Of a stretch of 64,000 bases of DNA, positions 44,050 to 56,651 are shown in pieces. A model generated the notes under the pieces. It worked only from the letters and a program-made list of their open reading frames with translations. It ran no database searches and had not been told where the DNA came from. Both the position numbers and the translations under genes were made by a program. The first letter of the stretch is position 1. Each line of letters opens with the position of its first letter. Origin of the DNA: Octopus bimaculoides (Eukaryota); contig NC_069000.1 in the NCBI RefSeq assembly GCF_001194135.2, positions 6,608,219 through 6,672,218 of the forward strand. Direction: 5' to 3'.

Positions 44050-45885
44050 ATAATTCTAATTTTGGCACAAAGCCAGCAATTTTTAGGGGAGGGGGGTAGT
44101 TGATTACATTATGGCCAGTATTTCACTGGTATTTCATTTTATTGAGTCAGGAAGGATGACAGGCCGAGTCAACCTTGGTGGTATCTGAACACAGAATGTA
44201 AAAAGCTAGAAAAAAATGCTGCTGAACATTTCACCTTCTATGTTGATGATCCTGTTAGATTACCACCTTAATAAGAATTCTTTTTACTTCAGGCACAAGA
44301 CCTGAAATTTTGTCAGAGAGGGGACTAATCAATTACATCAACCCCAGTGCTTTACCAGCATTTCATTTCATAAACCCTGAGACGATGACACGCAAAGCAG
44401 ACCTCAGAACATTAAAAAAAACCCAGAAGAAATGCTAAGCATTTTGTCCAATGAGCTAATGGTTCCATCAGCTTGCCACCTTAATAATGATTCTTTCTAT
44501 TATGAGCATAAGAGCTGAAATTTGGGAAGGAGAGCTAGCCAATTACAACACCCAACCTCCTCAGCGTTCAACTGGCACTATTTTATCGACTCCCACCAAA
44601 AGGACAAAATGCAAAATTGATCTTGGCAGCATTTGAACTGTGAAAGCAGAAGAAAAATACTGCTATCATTTTGTCCAGCATGTTAACAATGCTGCCAGCT
44701 GCCTCGATAGTTTAAATTTCAGCACAAGGCCAGTAAGAGGAGGATAGCCAATTACATTGATCCTAGTACTTGATTGGCACTATATTTCATTGACCCCCTA
44801 CCAAAAAAATTAAAGGCAAAGTTGACCAAGGCATGATTCGAACTGAGAATGTAAGGCTGGGAGAAATGCACTAAGCATTTTGTCCTGCACACAAACAATT
44901 CTGCCAGCTTGCTGGGTTTTTTTTAATAATAATAATTATGGCTTCAAATTTTTGTATAATTCCAGAAATCCTGGTGGAGGGGTGAGGCGGGATCAAAGAG
45001 TTGATTATATCAACCCCAGTACTCTTACTGACCCTGAAATGATGAACGGCAAAGTCAATAATAATCCTTTTTACTATAGGTTATAAGGCCTGAAATTTTG
45101 AGGTAGGGGTCTGGTTGATTACATCAACCCCAGTGCTCAAACTGCTGCTTGTTTTATCAATGCTTTAACGACTCTGGCAATCTAACCATCCTCAATGCGC
45201 TGATAACGATAATAAAAATAAATAATTCATTCTATAAAAGGCAAAAGGCCCTAAAATTTTTTGAGAGGAGAGGGTTAGTTGATTACATCAACGTCAAAGT
45301 TCAGCTGGTACTTATTTTATTGACCCCGAAAGGATGAAAAGCAAAGTCAACCTTGGTGGAATTTGAACCTTGAGCTGAAGAAATGCCACGAAGCATTTTC
45401 TCTGGCACAGAAATAATTCTGTCAGTTCTTCCTTACCTTAATAATTATTTAAAAAATTTTGTCACTTGGGCAAACAATTTTTGAGGGGAGGGGGAAATCA
45501 ATTATGTTGGCCCCAGTACTTCATTGGTACTTATTTTATTAACCGTGAAGGGATGAAAAGCAAAGTCAAACTTGGTGGAATTTGAACTTAGAATGCTGAG
45601 CTGAAAGAAATTCTGCCAAGCATTTTGCCAGGCACAGTAATAATTCTGTTAGTGCATTGCCTTAATAAAAAAAAAAGGGGAGGGGGACACGGGGCCAACA
45701 GTTTTGAGAGGCGAGAAAATCAATTGCATCAACCCTAGTACTTTGCTGGTATTAGTTTTTCTGACCCTAAAAAGATGAAAGGCAAAATCAACCTTGATGG
45801 AATTTGAACTCGGAACGTTAAGCCGGACAAACTGTTGCTAAGCATTTAGTCTGATGTGCTAAGAACTCTGCCAGCTCACCGCCTC
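44050..45885 (-). mobile_element. Array of nine head-to-tail family-D SINE copies
   Basis: Approximate copies: 44050-44270, 44270-44485, 44485-44710, 44710-44915, 44930-45060 (partial), 45060-45200 (partial), 45220-45440, 45440-45665 and 45685-45885. All share the same orientation and are mutually divergent. Confidence 0.85.
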
Positions 45886-46414
45886 CGTCACACTGATGAT
45901 AATAATAAAAATAAATAATGCTGAGAGAAATTCATTGAAATATAAATTACAGAGAGGAGGGCTTTAAATAAATCATATCTCTCTGCCGAGGTACATGTAT
46001 TGGACGTACAAACAAGAAGAAAAATGTACTCAATACATGCGACACAGTTTATTCATTTATACAAAAACTGAGGCTTCCTTTTGCTCCTACTTATGTGAAT
46101 TTCTTCGGCAATGTTCCACAAAGACGGCCAGAGTAATAATAATAATAATAATAATAATAATGATAATAATAATAATAATGATACATGTGCAAAACTCTGA
46201 GTAAAGACAGAGTGGAGTCTCAACTTTAAATAAATGGATATATTTATATACATACACACAGATATACATACATATATATATATCTATATATTGATATATA
46301 CACACACACATAACCATTCATATACATATAATACACACACACACATATTAGTCTATTAGTAATCGGCCTTGTTCAACCGAGGCAAGCAGGCAAGTAGACA
46401 GCAACTGAAATTTT

Positions 46415-46724
46415 TCACAATCCGTTCATATTGATGTCAGTTGGCATGAGATAGTCGTGCATGGCATACTTCCAGGTCCACAGCCGGGCAATCCGTTCAA
46501 ACTCCTGTCGACCACTCACGTAAAGTCGACCAATTGTTGGTTCCATACAGACGTGGCAGTAAGGATCGGTCAACAAGGACTGGATGCTAATGAGAACTTT
46601 GGAAATAGTCAATGCCAGACTCCAGTTGTGGTGAATAGAATCAAGACCGATGTCTCCGTGACGACTGATGTTGGGATGGAATATTTTCGTGATAAAACGC
46701 ACTTTTGGAGGTTTCATGGGGTAA
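46415..46724 (-). CDS. morgue: morgue coding exon 7 (UBC fold, C-terminal half) to stop
   Basis: ttccag| YPMKPPKVRFITKIFHPNISRHGDIGLDSIHHNWSLALTISKVLISIQSLLTDP...ARLWTWKYA...; TGA at 46417-46415. Confidence 0.95.
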
Positions 46725-49700
46725 CTGGAAATAACAATTGGAGAAACACTAAGATATATTGACAATAGAGAGAGACACATACACACACATGCGATCATTT
46801 GTCTTATGTTCATTTTGCTGTCAGCATGGGTTAGATGAATACTTAGTATGGCTGCATGGTCGAGAAGTTTGCTTCCCAACTATGTGGTCTTCGATTCAGT
46901 TCCACTGTGTGGCATCTTGAGCAAGTGTTTTCTACTATATCCACAAGCTGACCAAAGCCTTGTAGATGGAAACTGGAAGAAACCTAGATGTCTGTGATGT
47001 TGAAGTAGAGCTCTTTGAAACTGAATGCAGGAGACTGCATGAAGAGGGGAGGAGATGTCGTCATCAACCCCTTGTGACTGTTGTTCAGGGTCACTTTTAG
47101 TGTCCTCAGTGACCTGTCAGCCATTTCCACTCCCATGAAAAACAATGTGCTGGAGCAGAGCAGGATGAATGTCCTGGATTAATGCCGTCATCACCTTCGA
47201 TGGGTTGTCATAAGCAATAATACTTATTATTCACAATAGGAGCACTCCGTTGGTTACGACGATGAGGGTCCCAGCTGATACGATCAATGGAAGAGCTTGC
47301 TCATGAGATTGACGTGCAAGTGGCTGAGCACTCCACAGGCATGCGTACCCTTCACAAACATCTCAGGGGAGATTCAGCGTGACACAGAGTGTGATAGGGC
47401 TGGCCCCTTGAAATACAGGCACTTCTCATTTTTGCTAGCTGAGTGGACTGGAGCAATGTGAAATGAAGTGTCTTGCTCAAGAACACAACACGCCACCAGG
47501 AATTGAACTCGCAACCCTATGATTGCGAGCCGAATACCCTAACCATTAAGCCACACGCCTTCACAATATGTCTTATATAAATAACTATCTTTAAAAAAGT
47601 GATGGTCATGGTAGGAATACAGAGCATAGATCTACATGATCAGAACTGACTTGGGATTGACCTGGGGCTAAACAACAACAAAAAACAATTATAGCCACTC
47701 ATTTTAATTACTATACTGTACATTAGATACTGTGGTCCCAGATATGCTTTGCCTGAATTAAAGATGGGATAGTCACAGTCGGAACGTCTTTGATCACAGA
47801 TCCACATGGTCAGGAATAAACAACGGCATTCATTAAAAATCTGATACTATGATATAAAAGAATGTCCTAGAAATGTTTCAACTCACCTGTCTGGAATCTG
47901 TAGGTACAATAAGAACTGACCGCCTTCATATGGACTTCCCTGGGGTCCAGTGATTGAAGCCTGCCAATGGCAGCAGTTTTGGTCTAATGGTGTTGCTTGA
48001 ATACCTTCAGGTGGGTCTGTCTTTAAGGTTTTCAATTCACTTCGTAATCTTCTGTGACGCCAGGAATTCTCTTTGATAGGAGGTGTGCTCTGCAGATTAA
48101 AAAGAAAATCAAAATAAGCAACAGGATATCAAGTAGTAATGCAGTATGACCGCTTCAAGTGGCTCCATTTAAGTGAACAATGCAATCATTACATCAAGAT
48201 AGCTCTGCATTTAAATTGATGTAATGCTTGCATTGTTCAATTAAATGGCGCCACCTGAAACAGTCGTACTGCATCACTACTTGATATCCTGTTGCTTATT
48301 TTGAATATATTCACCTTACTTCAAGCTATGCGGATAGTATCAGACTCATATTCACCTTCTTGCACCTTGAAGATAAGCCCTGACACATCATCATCACCAC
48401 CATCTTTTCTCTTTCCAACCAGGGTACCCATGTGTCTCTTCTTCAGAATCAGCAAGACACCTGTCTCTGCCCCTCAATTATACTTTAAGCTCTCATCACC
48501 TGGCATAAAGCCACTTCCCTTGGCTCTACTGCAGTGAATTTGTCTTTAGAAGTTAAAATATGTTACAAAACATATTTTAACTAATCTAAAGTTTGTTAAT
48601 TTTGATTATGTTACTGACACAAGGCATGTGACCAGCTAAGTCACACACTAAACACACATACAATTAGTGCTTGTATGTCATCACCATCCTGACTTTTAGC
48701 TGTCATTTTCGATGTCACCATCAGAAGGAGGTATCTACAACATTGTTTCATTCCAATTGTCTTGAAGCTTTTCTTATCCTTTGCCAGTTTGAACAAATAC
48801 ACAACTACCTGTTTTTATATATAATACATACAAAGATGGGGAATTAGTCACCGATTACAGAAGACGAACACAGCTAAGATGATGATGACAAAAATGAGGA
48901 ATAAGCAGTAAGTGATTACTAAAGAATTAGTGACAAAAAGAGTAGCGCACAGGTTCCCGAAAAACGGGATCCTAGTAGTCTGATTTGGGGACAAGACCTT
49001 TGAAGGTTGTACATAAGCAGCTAGGTACTGAAGCCTGTGAAAAGGTCTTTAATGGTATATAACTGAGTATTCAGATAGAATTAATGCTGGGAGGTGGAGT
49101 AAGTGATGGCTTAGTGGTTAGGACTTGATGTGAGTAAAGAAGTTAAGGGAACATACTCTTGGGGGTAATAAAGAATCCTTCTTCCTCTTTATATGAAAAG
49201 ACTGTGCTTGTGTGTATGTGTGTGTGTATACAAATATATATCATCATCCTCATTTAACGTCCGTCCATCCATCTGACGGACGGACAGACGTATGTATAAG
49301 GCTTTTGGCTGTTGCCATATTGGGTTACTCAGAAATATTTGAATAAACTCAAATCCACACACAGACACATACACACATAAATACACTTTTCATATAGAGG
49401 AGGAAGAGTGTCTTCTGATAAACATGGTGAATGGGAAGCAAATAAAATGATGGTGAAGTGTATGCAGGTTGAAACCCTGAGTTCAAATCCCAACAAAGTC
49501 AAATTTACATTTCATGCTGTCAAGGGTCACCACTAGAGCAGAGTGGACAGCATTAGAGACAGAATGGGAATGGAATCAGATTTGGTTTAGACCAGTTCCA
49601 CTCCTGCTGTCAGATGTTAAAGCGCTGAAGAAAATAATGAGCTTGTTTGTGAACAAAATTAGCGAATCATTAATTAGCAAAGACAAAAACAAAAATAAAC

Positions 49701-52700
49701 CCAAAGTCAATAAGTTTGAAAACTGAGCTGTTTAAAAACACATGTCAGGGAACTGGTTAGCATGTGTTATGTAAGAAAGCATGGAAGCTAACAGATGTAC
49801 TTACTGTGTTACATATGGACCATGCTGGTTTAGAAACCTGCCAGGTACAAATGAAAACTAAAAGTTATGTCTCATAGACACAAACATGGCTGGCTGGTTA
49901 AGAAGTTAAGCTGATTACCCCCTCCCCACCCATAATCAATTGGTATTTATTTTATTGACCCTAAAAAAGATGAAAGGTAAAGTCAACCCTAGAGGAATTT
50001 GAGCTCTGAATGCAAAGATGGACGAAATGTTGCTAAGAATTCTGCCCAGCGTGCTTTATGATTCTGTCACCTTGCCGCCTTAAAAAGGAAATAAACATTG
50101 ATATAACTATCACCACCGCAACTTCAGCTCCTCTCCATTAATTCTCTAAATGCTCTTCAAACACCCAGGCTTTGTCTTTCCCATCTTGTTCCCTTTATTG
50201 GGTCTTATTTCTCAGGGTAAAGGCTAAAGACCCCCTTTGGTTATAAATGACCATAAGATTTCACCTAGAAAGTTCCTCTCTGAGGTACAAGTCCAAGCAA
50301 GTCTGTTTACTGCAGACCAGCCCCCCCCCCCCTGCACACCAAGGGAAAGGCAAAGGCTGATATATAGCATGGCACTAGAGATGTTGCAACTCATTTCTAC
50401 AGATGAGTGAACTGGAGCAATGTGAAATAAAGTGTCTTGCTCAAGAACAAAACAGCCCGGTCCAGGAATCGAACTCACTACCACATGATTGTGAGCCTGA
50501 TGCTCTAACCACTGAGTCATGTGCCTTCAGGCTCAGCAGTATGCTCAAGTATGTCATTGCTAAACTTTAACCTTAACTCTTCCTCACCCATATCCAAACT
50601 GAAGATCAAGCACATTATCTCTCACAAGTGTGGGATGTGAGTAGGGGAGACAACTTTAAACATCATTAGGGAACTGTGCCAAACTTCTTCGGCCACATAA
50701 CAGAAAAATGAAATAAAATAAAATAAAATATATATATTATATAAAACAAGGAGTTTCGGTTACCTGAAGCATCATACTTTCCAAACAATAACGGCATGGC
50801 GAACTCTCTAGTCTGTAAAGGAGAAAAAATGATAAACCAAGATGACTAAGCTAAACGAAAATACATTCTGGTACATAATTATCCAATGACACACACACCA
50901 AAGAACCACAGTCGTCATTCACAAGCGTGAATGACTTTGTGGTTTGTGATCATGCTTTTCTTAATTGTTTTTAGGTTCCTATGTAGATGTGAGAAGACAC
51001 AGGACTGTTTCTTGGTCCTCCCACCCCTTGATGTGTTTCAGTGGAAAACCAAGCATGTGACAGTTGGAGGGAAAGAGAGGGCCACGCCAACACTAGGCTG
51101 GATGCCCTTCATCGCTCAACCTTCACCTGTTTCCATGCAAGGTAAATATTTCACCCTGGCCAGACACGTTTCCATAAAAAACTGGCAACAAAAGACACCA
51201 CTTATATGATGGTGACACTCATTTACAACTACCATGCCATATCAATACAAAGAAGCACACACATATGATGGGCTTCTTTTCCGTTTCCATCTACTAAACC
51301 CACTCACAAGGCTTTAGTTGGCCTGACATTACAACAGAAGACGCTTGCCCCATGTGCCATGGAGTAGGACTGAAGCTGAAACCATATGGTGGGGAAAGCA
51401 AACTTTACAACCACACCTGAGCCTACCTGGTATATTACATACAGGAATACTACTCCCGTTTTAAAGACAAGGTAAAATTTGAAAGTAATTTAGCTGCTAA
51501 GTTTAGAAGATCAAATGACCAAGCAGGGACTTAGTCAAGGGATTAGAATGTACCCAGGCTGTTACACTGTACCTTGCCTACAATTATCACAACATACCAC
51601 TGTGTGTTGTATGGTAAGAACACATGATCAGTGGAACAACAGACCTTCAAATCCTATCTAGTCACTGAAACCAACTACCCCTGTGTATAACATATCTTCT
51701 GACATCAGGTTCCACAACAGAGAAGTTTTTGTAAAACATTAAAAAAAATTACAAGATTTATATTGATTTCAAGAATACTCACAGTTTCGAATATATCGTT
51801 TTCCAACACTTCACTTTGTAATACGGTCGGAAAAGAGGCCAACGCAGGCTAATGAAATGCTTCCACTGGGTTTGTGTTGTTTCTGCATCGAGGATCTGCC
51901 ACCATCTCGAACATACATTCCCGGCCATCCATCGTGAGATATCATCGAGGTGACGGAAAACTACCAGTAATACTGTGTAAAGATGAACAGATAAATAAAT
52001 GACAGACAGAGGAAGCTACCAGTAACAGTAGTAGGTAAATAGAGACAATGTAGAACAAACTGCCAATAATGGTGTGTAGAGATGAGAGAGAGGAAACTCG
52101 TAGTAATAGTGAGCTGACAGTTCTGTTCTATTCTGGACCCACCCACCTTATGAAACACAGCGCAGCTTTGCCCTTTGACCTTCCACTTCGTCATTGTCGT
52201 CGCACCCATCTTCAGCACAACTACGTCTTTCTTTCTGGGTGGAATCTTGTTTTAATGTAAGGCCACCTAGCTATATAAAGTGTCTCTTTGTGTGTAGAAA
52301 TGTCTGCATATTTTAATAACAAGGCTACCACCAAGCAAGCAAGCACAACCTAGTTGTGCCCGTCACTCTCGAATTTTATAATCCCCGTCTGTAATTAATT
52401 CTCCATTTATATAACCTAATGTTGGTGTCAAAAGGGTTAAGAGAGATGATGGAGAAATCACTGAGTGCTAAAGGGTTGAGAATTTGGTACCTTCAGGTGG
52501 CAGAGAGTCTACAAGACCTTCAGGAATAGATTCTTTGTCAGTGTCGCGAGCAATAGTCAGAGAAGTAATTCTTTCGGTTAGTTTGTCCATTTTGTGAGAA
52601 TGGGATTTCACTACGTGAGTTCTTTTATCTTTCTGAGTGTAGAAATCAGCTGCGGCATCTGGTTCTTCATTGCCAGAATCATCTGAATCGGCTTTCTGGA

Positions 52701-54444
52701 AGTAAAAAAAAAAAATTTTTTTAAATAAAAAAAAATCACTGAAAAAATTTACAAACAAATTATTGTTTAGCTCTTAATTGTTTGTTTTTTTTTATACGCT
52801 ACTTCCCATGAGTTATTCTTGCTTCACCCCCAACACCTGCATCAGAGGTCATGTGAAGATTCAGAAGCTTTCTTTCCTCCTCTTACATAGCCATAAAAAA
52901 AAACCCTACCAAAAACAGAGGTTGAAATAACGTTTTGGATTTGATTTCTTGAGGGTATCCCCACCTCCTCTACATTGGCCCCCTCCAAGAAATAGAGAAA
53001 ATGGAGAATTTCTACTTACTTCTGTGTAGACTTGTTGTTCATCTTCATCTTTGTTGATGTCATAAGAGAACAGGAATAAATGGCATGTTCCACATATAGG
53101 CTGTCCAAAGTTGTTGCTATAGAACCCACTGCACATGGAACAGGTGGGGTACTGAAAGGAAGGCAAGGAGAAAAAGAAAAAGAGAAACATTTTGTGTCAA
53201 GTTCATCATCATCATCATCATGATTATAATTAAATAATAATAGAAACTCCCCCCCCCCCCCCATATATACAATCTTTATTTGTGGATGAATAATACTACC
53301 AATAGTTTTATTTGGAAAAAAATCTCCGCAATTTTCAAGTGAGTCACTTAAAAATTGTGGAGACTCTTTCCACATGAAACCAATTTTCACAAGCTTCATG
53401 CAACTGAAAAAGAGTTAATCACTGAAAGGGATCACAAATGACCCTTGTTATTTCTAGTATGAAAATAGTAAGTAGGGTGAAATTTGAAGGTGATTTGGCT
53501 GCTATTTCTACAGGCTGACCAACCATACAGAGGTTTCATAATAATAACACCATTTAACAAACAGTCACCCCAATTAACAACGTGGCTTGTCTGTCGAATA
53601 CAAATACCAAACATTACTAACATTCTTCTTTAAAGACAGCATTTAGTAAAGATTTTATCTTTTATCTTTTATTTGTTTCAGTTATTACATTGTGGCCATG
53701 CTGGAGCACTGCCCTGAAGAACTTCTAGTCAAATGAATTGACCCCAGGATTTATTTCTTTAGCAGACCATTTTGTTATGAGGATGTAAACACACCAACAC
53801 CAGTTGTCAAGTGGTGGTGGGAGACAGACACACACACACATATGATGGGCTTCTTTCAGTTTCCATCTACCAAATCCACTCAAACATTTGGTCAACCCAA
53901 GTCTATAGCAGAAGACACTTGCCCAAAGTGCCAAACAGTGGAACTGAACCTGGGAGGCAAAGCTCTTGCCATACAGCTAAACATTGGGTGTTTAGCCCCA
54001 GGCTGGCTCTGATCCAACAGACCTATAATGAAAGGCATTCCAGCTATGACCATCCAATCTTTTTCTTCAGTAATTATATATTCAGGACAACATGTTCCAA
54101 ATGTGACCTCCGATAACACATTTTTTTTTTTGCCCCTGAAGACAGAAAAGTATGCGTTGATGGAGAATTGTCTGCTATTTTTAGCAAGTTTAGTGATTAC
54201 AGGGGACCCTGTGTCATAAGGATCAATAAACTGCTAAAACGTCTTTGATCATAGGTTGGTGTGATATTCGTTGTATGTTCCCACTTAGAAACCTAGCAGA
54301 ATAGCAATCTAAGGTGAAGTACTCAATACATAACGTAGAGTGAATATATTCTGATAAAAAAATGACTCTTCACTTGACAAACACAAGTCTTGTAAAAGAT
54401 TTTGGGTGATCTGTATATTTGTACACACAGAGCCATATACATAT

Positions 54445-54497
<53 letters not shown>

Positions 54498-55489
54498 TGA
54501 CTCTTTACACAAAATCAAAGAAAACGTTATGGAAAAATACAGCACTACATGCATAATAATGCACGCAAACATGGACATGTTTTTTTACTATCTAAAACGA
54601 AGTCCGTATCTAGAGCGATAGTTTTGATAAACAAACAATATTTTTATACACAATTTACGACTATTAAAAACTACGCAAATGAATAATGTGTGTGTGTTGT
54701 TTAACCGTAGGTCAACCGTGTCGAGTATCGTCAAATGCATGACAGTCCATGTTTTTAATTGTATCAATGGAATGTTACTTTACAATGGGTCTTTCTCAGT
54801 TTAGGACGATAGGGTACGTGGAATAAAGAAATTTGGCTGCTATTATCTGTCGGACGAGCAACCACTTGGTAGAAGCTCATCCGCTTATGCGTGTGTGTTG
54901 TGTGTGTGCGTGTGTGTGTATGTATATATATATATATATATAAAAGAAGCCTACATATATATATATATATGTGCGTATATATGCACACACATATACATAC
55001 ATACTCGCTATGTTGTTCTCGATAGTACTAGATTACAAGGAAAAACTACAAAAGAGGACGTTAATAAATTAATTGGGTTTTACTATAAACTTAAAACGTA
55101 GAAAACCTCTTTCATAAGTATGTTTATATATATGCATAATATATATACATAAGCGATCTGCAGAAAGATCGCCAATACATATATACGCATATATGTATTT
55201 GGTCTATGTGTGTGTAAACTAACATTAATTGTGCGGATGGAAATTATTCAATTAACGAGAAACATCCATAAAAAAACATCGACAAAAACCAAAATAACAA
55301 TTAAAGAATTTTGAAAAACCTCCCCAAATGAAGCAAGCATTTTAGATGAAACAGCAAAAAGCCCGACCACAAATCTCTACAAGGCTTGACAGAGTGTATA
55401 ATGTAGCAAGGATAGATATATAATGTTGCTAGAGACATTACCTCGGGTTCTAGAAATTCCCAAACATCGACATGGAACTTTAAACTCAT
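46415..55489 (-). CDS. morgue: Morgue-like protein: C4 zinc finger + F-box + ubiquitin-conjugating-enzyme variant (catalytic Cys to Gly), 7 coding exons, about 378 aa
   Basis: Minus-strand exons 55489-55442, 53151-53020, 52695-52491, 51972-51783, 50812-50764, 48089-47887 and 46724-46415 are GT-AG and phase-consistent; total 1137 nt. Motifs: CSMC-x12-CGTC; F-box LPPEVLLVVFRHLD...VCSRW; UBC fold RRLRSEL...W.ASITGPQGSPYEGG.F...YPMKPPKVRFITKIFHPNISRHGDIGLD. This domain combination is the established architecture of Drosophila Morgue. Confidence 0.92.
47241..47563 (-). mobile_element. SINE family E in morgue intron 6
   Basis: Reverse complement of the 41189-41510 copy. Confidence 0.82.
47887..48089 (-). 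CDS. morgue: morgue coding exon 6 (UBC fold, N-terminal half)
   Basis: ctgcag| STPPIKENSWRHRRLRSELKTLKTDPPEGIQATPLDQNCCHWQASITGPQGSPYEGGQFLLYLQIPD |gtgagt. Confidence 0.95.
48109..48304. repeat. Palindromic MITE: 89-bp arms, 18-nt spacer
   Basis: 48109-48197 vs 48216-48304 are reverse complements with about 8 mismatches; a one-armed relative lies at about 4396-4500. Confidence 0.88.
50200..50530 (-). mobile_element. tRNA-derived SINE sharing the family-E head and centre but with a different 3' tail
   Basis: The head and centre match family E; the tail (ccaagggaaaggcaaaggc.gata..gc.tggcac) recurs at about 22330-22500. Confidence 0.65.
50764..50812 (-). CDS. morgue: morgue coding exon 5
   Basis: tttacag| LESSPCRYCLESMMLQ |gtaacc; this 49-nt exon supplies exactly the phase 2-to-0 bridge needed between exons 4 and 6. 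Confidence 0.85.
51783..51972 (-). CDS. morgue: morgue coding exon 4 (F-box)
   Basis: acacag| VLLVVFRHLDDISRWMAGNVCSRWWQILDAETTQTQWKHFISLRWPLF...IYSK |gtgagt; absent from the ORF track. Confidence 0.9.
52491..52695 (-). CDS. morgue: morgue coding exon 3 (acidic linker, start of F-box)
   Basis: ttccag| KADSDDSGNEEPD...GLVDSLPPE g|gtacca. Confidence 0.9.
53020..53151 (-). CDS. morgue: morgue coding exon 2 (C4 zinc finger)
   Basis: tttcag| YPTCSMCSGFYSNNFGQPICGTCHLFLFSYDINKDEDEQQVYTE |gtaagt. Confidence 0.92.
53660..53980 (-). mobile_element. SINE family A in morgue intron 1
   Basis: Colinear with the 2008-2382 copy. Confidence 0.8.
55442..55489 (-). CDS. morgue: morgue coding exon 1
   Basis: ATG MSLKFHVDVWEFLEPE |gtaatg, phase 0 matching exon 2; CpG-rich context. 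Confidence 0.75.
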
Positions 55490-55751
55490 TTTACAAAACC
55501 CGACAGCAGTCAGGTCGAGGCGTCACCACGAGACTTGTTCGAAAATAAAGATATAAACTCTTAATCTGTCATTCGTACTTTTTTGATCCAAAACAAGAAC
55601 ACAAAATTGTTTTATAATTAAATTATGTATTTATAAGGAGGATATTTTTTAAATAATGGAATTTTTTATTTTTGTTGTAAAATAACTACATTTTTTAATA
55701 GTTATATTTTTATTTCTGATTATATATTTTGATATTCAAACATTTTTAATT

Positions 55752-55816
<65 letters not shown>

Positions 55817-56651
55817 NNNNNNNNNNNNNNNNNNNNNNNNNNNNNNNNNNNNNNNNNNNNNNNNNNNNNNNNNNNNNNNNNNNNNNNNNNNNNNNNNNNN
55901 NNNNNNNNNNNNNNNNNNNNNNNNNNNNNNNNNNNNNNNNNNNNNNNNNNNNNNNNNNNNNNNNNNNNNNNNNNNNNNNNNNNNNNNNNNNNNNNNNNNN
56001 NNNNNNNNNNNNNNNNNNNNNNNNNNNNNNNNNNNNNNNNNNNNNNNNNNNNNNNNNNNNNNNNNNNNNNNNNNNNNNNNNNNNNNNNNNNNNNNNNNNN
56101 NNNNNNNNNNNNNNNNNNNNNNNNNNNNNNNNNNNNNNNNNNNNNNNNNNNNNNNNNNNNNNNNNNNNNNNNNNNNNNNNNNNNNNNNNNNNNNNNNNNN
56201 NNNNNNNNNNNNNNNNNNNNNNNNNNNNNNNNNNNNNNNNNNAAACGAATTATGTAAAACAATGCCGTTACCGAACAAGACGGTTGTTCCGCCACCCGGT
56301 TTCGATTCCCGGTTATAGCCATTTCAATTTAATTAGTTTTCATTTGGTCTTTAGTTTTTAATGCCGTTTGTAAAAGTTGTTCACATTATAGTGGTTTAAT
56401 TTTCTTCCCAACAATATTCTAAGCTTCATGTTTTAGAAAGAAAATAGAATAAAGCACTTAAAAGAACACAACATACGAATTTACTAAGAATGTGAACTAT
56501 GTGAATAGTTATCTAACTTTGTATGCAAGTGTGTTTTTGAGACGAACGAACCGGGTGTTAATTCTTTGTAAAACCATAAAACCTAGGAATATACCAATTA
56601 ATGGCATAATTAACTCTTAATTCGCTGTTATTTCACAACATTCCTTAAACA
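55490..56651. promoter_or_regulatory. Probable bidirectional promoter between morgue and INTS8
   Basis: Divergent start codons at 55489 (-) and 56652 (+), nominally 1.16 kb apart including a 426-N gap; CpG-retaining sequence on both sides. Confidence 0.65.

Follow-up and report, generated by a model that had tools for sequence, protein, structure and literature searches.

Morgue proteins are recognised by a zinc finger with the spacing CX2CX12CX2C, an F-box that typically contains five Trp residues, and a UEV domain in which Gly stands in place of the active-site Cys, a substitution found in no other UEV (PMC3787007). The F-box of the fly protein binds SkpA, which co-purifies with Morgue from adult flies; fly Morgue also associates with DIAP1 in vitro and reduces its level, it binds Lys48 (K48)-linked ubiquitin multimers by way of its N-terminal as well as its C-terminal region, and cell death and circadian light responses are altered when it is lost or over-expressed (PMC3787007). 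Here we analyse a gene of Octopus bimaculoides, LOC106869184, which occupies positions 55489..46415 on the minus strand of a 64,000-nucleotide stretch of contig NC_069000.1 (forward-strand positions 6,608,219 to 6,672,218). This whole stretch is referred to below as the window, and coordinates are given in its numbering.

An earlier reading of this DNA, made from its letters alone (the sequence-only reading), had proposed that the gene has the Morgue architecture. At the level of sequence, the octopus protein does carry every feature by which Morgue is defined in PMC3787007, and we judge LOC106869184 to be almost certainly the Morgue ortholog of O. bimaculoides, with a canonical site that is not catalytic. 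The reading that best explains the evidence as a whole, and that we hold to be very probable, is that of a Morgue ortholog with a dead-E2 UEV, perhaps serving as an SCF-linked adaptor. The Morgue family and a full RefSeq model of the gene are already known, and the octopus member is an ordinary, as yet unnamed addition.

Gene structure and splicing

The open reading frame (ORF), spliced from seven exons on the minus strand (55489..46415), comprises 1137 nt and encodes 378 residues. Exon 1 (55442..55489) opens with the ATG at 55489-55487, codes for residues 1-16 (MSLKFHVDVWEFLEPE) and is followed immediately by a GT donor. Exon 2 (53020..53151; residues 17-60), with its donor GT at 53019, carries the C4 zinc finger at 53142-53083. 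In exon 3 (52491..52695; residues 61-128), the acidic motif KADSDDSGNEEP (52695-52660) is followed by a disordered spacer and then by the start of the F-box (LPPE). The F-box helices and a helical extension, together with five Trp residues, are encoded by exon 4 (51783..51972; residues 129-191), and the linker LESSPCRYCLESMMLQ, which contains a CxxC motif (C198, C201), by exon 5 (50764..50812; residues 192-208). The UBC/UEV domain is divided between exon 6 (47887..48089; residues 209-275), which provides the N-terminal half consisting of helix 1 and strands 1-3, and exon 7 (46415..46724; residues 276-378), which provides the C-terminal half with the HPN motif (46678-46670), the GGT codon of Gly302 (46648-46646), the loop sequence CHVC (46558-46547) and the stop codon TGA (46417-46415).

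All six introns are of the GT-AG type, with acceptors lying behind pyrimidine-rich tracts and with phases of 0, 0, 1, 2, 0 and 2. The introns amount to about 7.9 kb in total, and the G+C content is 44% in the exons and 39% across the whole gene span. An exact-sequence look-up showed that the 378-residue translation matches XP_014770298.1, residue for residue; this entry is RefSeq isoform X2 of LOC106869184 and is named 'uncharacterized protein'. The seven-exon, phase-consistent ORF put forward in the sequence-only reading is thus borne out by the splice sites and by the exact identity of its translation with isoform X2. What that reading missed is an eighth, alternative exon of 33 nt (49805..49837, minus strand), which begins and ends in phase 0, has the acceptor ..ctggcag and the donor gtaagtac, and codes for the peptide VSKPAWSICNT. 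This cassette exon is used in the 389-residue isoform X1 and skipped in isoform X2. The identical cassette peptide occurs in isoform X1 of Octopus sinensis, and the exon is not present in the decapodiform transcripts L001-L006 described below. With this exon, the connection from F-box to UEV is 11 residues longer and contains one extra Cys.

An in-frame stop codon lies upstream of the exon 1 ATG. In O. sinensis the ATG is located 8 codons further upstream (MTAVGFCK-MSLK...); in O. bimaculoides, where this stretch is 55490-55513 on the minus strand, the corresponding codon is CTG. Given this CTG and the upstream in-frame stop, the translation start is therefore shifted with respect to that of O. 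sinensis. Overall, the gene is real, intact and already fully held by RefSeq, and the one shortcoming of its record is the name.

Support at the RNA level for the joining of the F-box and UBC exons, a further claim of the sequence-only reading, comes from another cephalopod. Six RNA-derived contigs of 1.5 kb from a decapodiform species (L001-L006) encode a protein of 386 residues (P0001; 92% identity by BLASTP), and they align in order to exons 2, 3, 4, 6 and 7 of the window. Consecutive query segments abut one another, and the breaks in the alignment coincide with the predicted splice sites to within an overhang of 2-3 nt. Exon 5 is not long enough to give a score in this alignment, and the query gap of 46-49 nt fits its length. 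From this collinearity it follows that the F-box and UBC parts reside on one mRNA in that cephalopod.

Comparison of the octopus coding sequence with the decapodiform mRNA gave proportions of non-synonymous (pN) and synonymous (pS) differences of 0.05 and 0.87, respectively, and a pN/pS of about 0.06. These values are uncorrected, and no dN/dS ratio of corrected distances is quoted because synonymous sites are saturated at a pS of 0.87. Within this comparison of sequences, the pattern indicates strong purifying selection in every domain.

Domain organisation and predicted structure

The zinc finger, F-box and UEV are arranged in this order in one polypeptide, as defined by the spliced ORF and its identity with XP_014770298.1. 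The sequence-only reading had listed a CSMC-x12-CGTC finger, an F-box and a complete UBC fold, and both the coordinates and the Pfam matches agree with it. The finger, C20-S-M-C23-x12-C36-G-T-C39, has the CX2CX12CX2C spacing of Morgue; no relative of it was found in Pfam, nor in a search of the PDB with the N-terminal 217 residues. The latter search returned a weak match to the F-box of Skp2 and nothing else (residues 115-160, E=0.063). In Pfam, residues 123-156 match the F-box-like family (E=1.5e-6, 28.3 bits compared with a cut-off of 24.3), and the five Trp residues of the F-box region and its extension are W143, W152, W165, W173 and W185.

The UEV is matched by Pfam UQ_con at residues 222-358 (E=5.8e-42), spanning profile positions 1-139 of 140; neither this match nor that to the F-box-like family could be expected by chance. 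Its nearest relative of solved structure is UBE2D2/UbcH5b (E=1.8e-44, about 50% identity), and the ungapped alignment places Gly302 opposite position 85. The HPN motif is intact at residues 292-294, and the eighth residue after its Asn is Gly302, the local sequence reading HPNISRHGDIGLD. An active E2 has a UBC fold with an HPN motif, which are present here, and a catalytic Cys eight residues past the HPN Asn, which is absent. The observation of Gly at this point in the sequence-only reading is confirmed by the codon itself, read in the window as GGT at 46648-46646, and by the homologs described below. Since there is no thiol at the canonical position, ubiquitin cannot be accepted there from E1, and the domain is therefore a UEV and not an enzyme.

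A model calculated with AlphaFold2 using 122 homologs has a mean predicted local distance difference test score (pLDDT) of 80.5 and a predicted template modelling score (pTM) of 0.79. The helices of the F-box are modelled with pLDDT values of 94-97; the values fall below 50 in the spacer formed by residues 55-96, which is predicted to be disordered. Following superposition of the modelled UBC core on UbcH5 structures, the target-normalised TM score is 0.93-0.95 and the root-mean-square deviation (rmsd) is 1.4-1.5 Å, with sequence identities of 50-51%. The pTM of 0.79 suggests that the F-box and UEV parts pack together as one body in the model.

Conservation and phyletic distribution

A protein homology search with a threshold of E<=1e-10 identified 839 homologs; the best 120 of these, all with E<=4e-121, are considered here. 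Nearly all of the 120 are full length, and 119 have precomputed Pfam matches to both F-box and UQ_con, the exception being P0025, which has UQ_con only. Among these 120 proteins, the BLASTP identity with the octopus sequence tracks animal phylogeny, from 92% in cephalopods, through 72-78% in gastropods and bivalves, 72% in a nemertean, 63-67% in annelids and 58% in a priapulid, to about 50-59% in arthropods. Many of the arthropod matches carry the NCBI names 'morgue' or 'modifier of rpr and grim, ubiquitously expressed' (E of about 1e-134 to 1e-121), the latter being the Drosophila gene's name in full; they share 50-59% of residues with the octopus protein over 77-96% of its length. The 90% identity cluster to which the octopus protein belongs includes O. 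sinensis/vulgaris, Argonauta hians, Acanthosepion pharaonis and the transcriptome assemblies of another cephalopod. Altogether the same fusion is present in more than 100 species from at least six phyla.

The residues that define Morgue are conserved to a very high degree in the 122 aligned homologs. Gly302 is found in all of them, among which are 7 other cephalopod sequences derived from independent genomes and transcriptomes. The HPN motif is present in 121 of the 122, that is, in every sequence covering those columns. The finger spacing is retained in 117; the other five are short or partial models, and there are zero substitutions at the four Cys columns. Each of the five Trp residues occurs in 111-122 of the homologs (91-100%).

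Conservation extends to positions outside the family definition. Both Cys residues of the linker CxxC, C198 and C201, are present in 122 of 122 homologs, and in the loop on the active-site side C332 and C335 are present in 106 and 120, respectively. Two proteins of one lineage, P0034 and P0075, are without the loop pair and keep the linker CxxC. A motif (E)K-x-D-x-x-D-S-G-[NT]-[DE]-E-P at residues 61-72 (52660-52695) is found in 121 of the 122 homologs, as is its core DSGxx[ED]P, and it sits in the segment that AlphaFold predicts to be disordered (pLDDT <50). From its sequence, this DSG motif looks like a short linear motif; it resembles DSG degrons of the beta-TrCP/Slimb type and CK2 sites. 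The linker CxxC, the C-x-x-C-M-E loop, the SRHGD rim and the DSG-N-E-E-P motif are not mentioned in PMC3787007, and these four invariant motifs are apparently undescribed for Morgue.

As a separate observation on the cysteines, a second metal site and a disulfide are both conceivable for the linker and loop pairs. An inter-domain pairing of C149 with C335 was also entertained, on the grounds that P0034 and P0075, the only proteins without C149, also lack C332 and C335. It was rejected because C149 is the general consensus Cys of the F-box (VC-K/S-RW, as in Skp2); moreover, the two proteins are 74% identical, and so the joint loss of C149, C332 and C335 is probably a single evolutionary event.

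The distribution of Morgue given in PMC3787007 lists protostome superphyla only, and the sequence-only reading had likewise spoken of a spread among protostome phyla, molluscs included. The protostome homologs are there, but the family extends beyond protostomes: full-length copies with finger, F-box and Gly are found in two hemichordates, Saccoglossus kowalevskii (P0080) and Glandiceps talaboti (P0048), the latter encoded on a 28-Mb contig. In view of these hemichordate copies, the family as judged from sequence probably predates both the protostome-deuterostome split and the protostome lineages from which Morgue is known.

Naming of orthologs

The sequence-only reading had warned that automated annotation could label the gene an ordinary E2. 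This did not happen in O. bimaculoides, where the model is complete and named 'uncharacterized protein', but it has happened to full-length orthologs elsewhere. Among molluscs, orthologs are entered as E2-17 kDa (Acanthosepion pharaonis), UBE2O (Patella vulgata), E2 D2 (Plakobranchus ocellatus) and UBC9 (Biomphalaria pfeifferi and Mya arenaria), and among arthropods as E2-17 kDa (Camponotus) and E2 5A (spiders and Atta); the UniRef name is the generic 'E2 ubiquitin-conjugating enzyme'. All of these misnamed full-length orthologs are without the catalytic Cys. Because this cysteine is absent, the octopus protein should be neither classified as an E2 enzyme nor given the name of one, and neither it nor its cephalopod orthologs should be credited with E2 activity. 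The value of the analysis lies mainly in curation, as the name Morgue-like is now available for the octopus gene and for its orthologs in other cephalopods.

Proposed mechanism

By analogy with the fly protein, octopus Morgue may function as an SCF adaptor and ubiquitin reader, a proposal for which we consider the case to be evenly poised. The F-box would dock on Skp1 and hence on a Cullin-RING ligase. The UEV and the N-terminal region would bind K48 polyubiquitin non-covalently and/or RING proteins that use UBE2D, such as the inhibitor of apoptosis proteins (IAPs). Clients might thereby be brought to ubiquitination and proteasomal turnover, which would favour caspase activation; in flies, it is circadian light responses that are affected as well.

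The surface around Gly302 is of interest in this context. The positions at which Morgue is conserved to 95% or more yet differs from UBE2D2 cluster around the former active site (UBE2D2 79-83, 85, 88-89, 92 and 118-120) and at two RING contacts, F62 becoming M or L and P95 an invariant L. Because the rim is unlike that of UBE2D2 but frozen across phyla, the pattern of conservation supports the view that the former active site has been repurposed as a binding cleft and has not decayed. A more elaborate version, which we regard as tentative and on the whole doubtful, would have the E2 domain rebuilt: the SRHGDIG...HN rim and the C-x-x-C-M-E loop, which hardly vary between octopus, insects and hemichordates, would together with the linker CxxC make up an additional metal site or a linkage-specific pocket for the K48 isopeptide or the ubiquitin tail, and DSG-N-E-E-P would be a degron or docking site under another ligase.

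A number of points weigh against the reading of the protein as a Morgue ortholog and SCF-linked adaptor. The link to Drosophila melanogaster Morgue runs through the NCBI-named arthropod orthologs and the family definition in PMC3787007. Transcript evidence from O. bimaculoides was not found, the genome contig being the sole source from which the exact proteins are recorded. A literature search found no functional evidence for any cephalopod or mollusc, in agreement with the statement in the sequence-only reading that the role in cephalopods is uncharacterised. In flies, furthermore, the F-box is dispensable for over-expression lethality and for the enhancement of cell death, and replacement of Gly421 by Ala, Cys or Ser is without effect in those assays (PMC3787007). 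The invariant Gly, the linker CxxC and the DSG motif are concrete residues to mutate.

Alternative interpretations

The main mechanistic rival is that Morgue is a pseudo-E2 acting independently of SCF, its UEV serving as a decoy for RING E3s (e.g. IAPs) or capping or shielding K48 chains, with no use made of the F-box or of Cullin. It draws on the deletion experiments in flies, where removal of the F-box leaves both the lethality and the enhancement of cell death and removal of the UEV weakens both (PMC3787007), and on the 50-51% identity of the UEV to UBE2D2, in which the RING- and ubiquitin-facing surface is largely kept (R5, P61, the K63 equivalent, S94, A96 and the crossover helix). This surface is, however, altered at the RING-contact positions, with M or L for F62 and the invariant L for P95. 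Moreover, the F-box and its five Trp residues are as conserved as the UEV across phyla, which argues that the F-box is in use, and the co-purification of SkpA with Morgue from adult flies points the same way (PMC3787007). We consider this rival unlikely, though it deserves to be taken seriously.

The protein might instead be an atypical active E2, an E2-E3 hybrid in which the thioester is taken by the near-invariant C335, equivalent to UBE2D2 position 118. The frequencies of C335 (120/122) and C332 (106/122), their location on either side of the residue that corresponds to D117 of UBE2D2 in the gate loop of the active site, and the retention of HPN and D87 are all in keeping with such an activity. 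The lineage of two related proteins without C332 and C335 nevertheless keeps everything else, and transfer from E1 to E2 needs precise placement of the acceptor Cys. In addition, a thioester has not been reported for Morgue, and the fly G421C substitution has no phenotype (PMC3787007). An activity of this kind is very improbable.

That the protein is an ordinary E2 whose Gly is a sequencing or assembly error would suit the E2-type database names of its homologs and the strong UQ_con match, but it can hardly be credited when the codon reads GGT in the window, Gly is found in 122 of 122 homologs, the 7 other cephalopod sequences included, and A-to-I RNA editing, common as it is in octopus, is unable to turn GGT into a Cys codon. 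An artefact of the gene model, with two adjacent genes joined in silico or a decaying pseudogene, is equally far-fetched: exon 5 is only 49 nt long, intron 5 extends over 2.7 kb and within this window the join is supported by short signals only, but contiguous transcripts of another cephalopod span the join and refute the artefact for cephalopods as a group, the fusion recurs across species and phyla with the linker exon and its invariant CxxC conserved, the pN/pS is about 0.06, and the pTM of 0.79 suggests joint packing of F-box and UEV. The Morgue ortholog with a non-catalytic UEV remains our preferred reading.

Genomic surroundings

The gene is set in repeat- and gap-rich sequence, the window containing 13 runs of N that total 4836 N. 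One assembly gap, at 55817-56242, begins 328 nt upstream of the ATG, and the promoter region and 5' untranslated region are therefore incomplete. On the 3' side, an AATAAA at 46048..46053 (minus strand), 362 nt past the stop codon, is a candidate polyadenylation signal on the basis of the motif only.

The intron preceding exon 6 holds an inverted repeat (48102..48311, minus strand) with arms of 96 nt that are 89% complementary, ending 13 nt upstream of the exon 6 acceptor. Folded as RNA, it has a minimum free energy of -136 kcal/mol and a z of -20.7 relative to shuffled sequences. No second copy was found in the window, and the repeat is probably part of a transposon-like insertion, which may resemble a miniature inverted-repeat transposable element. 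Double-stranded RNA situated near a splice site and downstream of the cassette exon might, speculatively, influence splicing or serve as a substrate for ADAR.

At least three families of short repeats resembling short interspersed elements (SINEs) populate the introns and 3' flank, with copies that are 72-93% identical and in some cases inverted. Copies of the first family lie at 45530-45624, 45752-45846 and 49947-50041, with more seen by eye down to about 44300; further families are represented at 47437-47490 and 50401-50454, and by 46895-46956 compared with 53887-53948. By eye the intron repeats look tRNA- or SINE-like, although a scan of the window for tRNAs with ARAGORN found none. An Rfam scan of 45500-56000 gave 11 matches to miRNA families, ten of them in TA/TG microsatellites and one in the intronic hairpin; all score far below the gathering scores, and we took them as chance. 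Eight other long ORFs in the window have no Pfam domain, no neighbouring gene was identified, and nothing gene-like was found on the plus strand of the gene region.

Comparison with known systems

Octopus Morgue shares with Drosophila Morgue its domain order, the spacing of its finger, an F-box with five Trp residues and a UEV with HPN and Gly. It differs in being shorter, the 378-residue octopus protein having its Gly at position 302 and the fly protein at position 421 (numbering of PMC3787007), and in having an alternative insertion of 11 residues between the linker and the UEV. With Mms2/UEV1A and TSG101 it has in common a UBC fold without the catalytic cysteine, and those proteins bind ubiquitin non-covalently (PMC3787007). 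What distinguishes the Morgue UEV from them is that UBE2D is its closest relative, that HPN is retained, that it is joined to an F-box and that it has Gly (PMC3787007).

Relative to UBE2D2, the UBC core is about 50% identical with an rmsd of about 1.5 Å, and HPN, N77, D87, W93, S94, A96 and the crossover helix are the same; the differences are the replacement of C85 by Gly, of F62 by M and of P95 by L, and the fusion of the octopus domain to some 215 N-terminal residues. The general plan, in which an N-terminal F-box with the VC(K/S)RW motif precedes a C-terminal protein-binding domain, is that of SCF receptors of the FBXO type such as Skp2, although the match to Skp2 is weak (E=0.063) and the 'substrate-binding' domain of the octopus protein is an E2 fold. 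To our knowledge, an E2 fold takes the place of the substrate-binding domain in no other F-box family.

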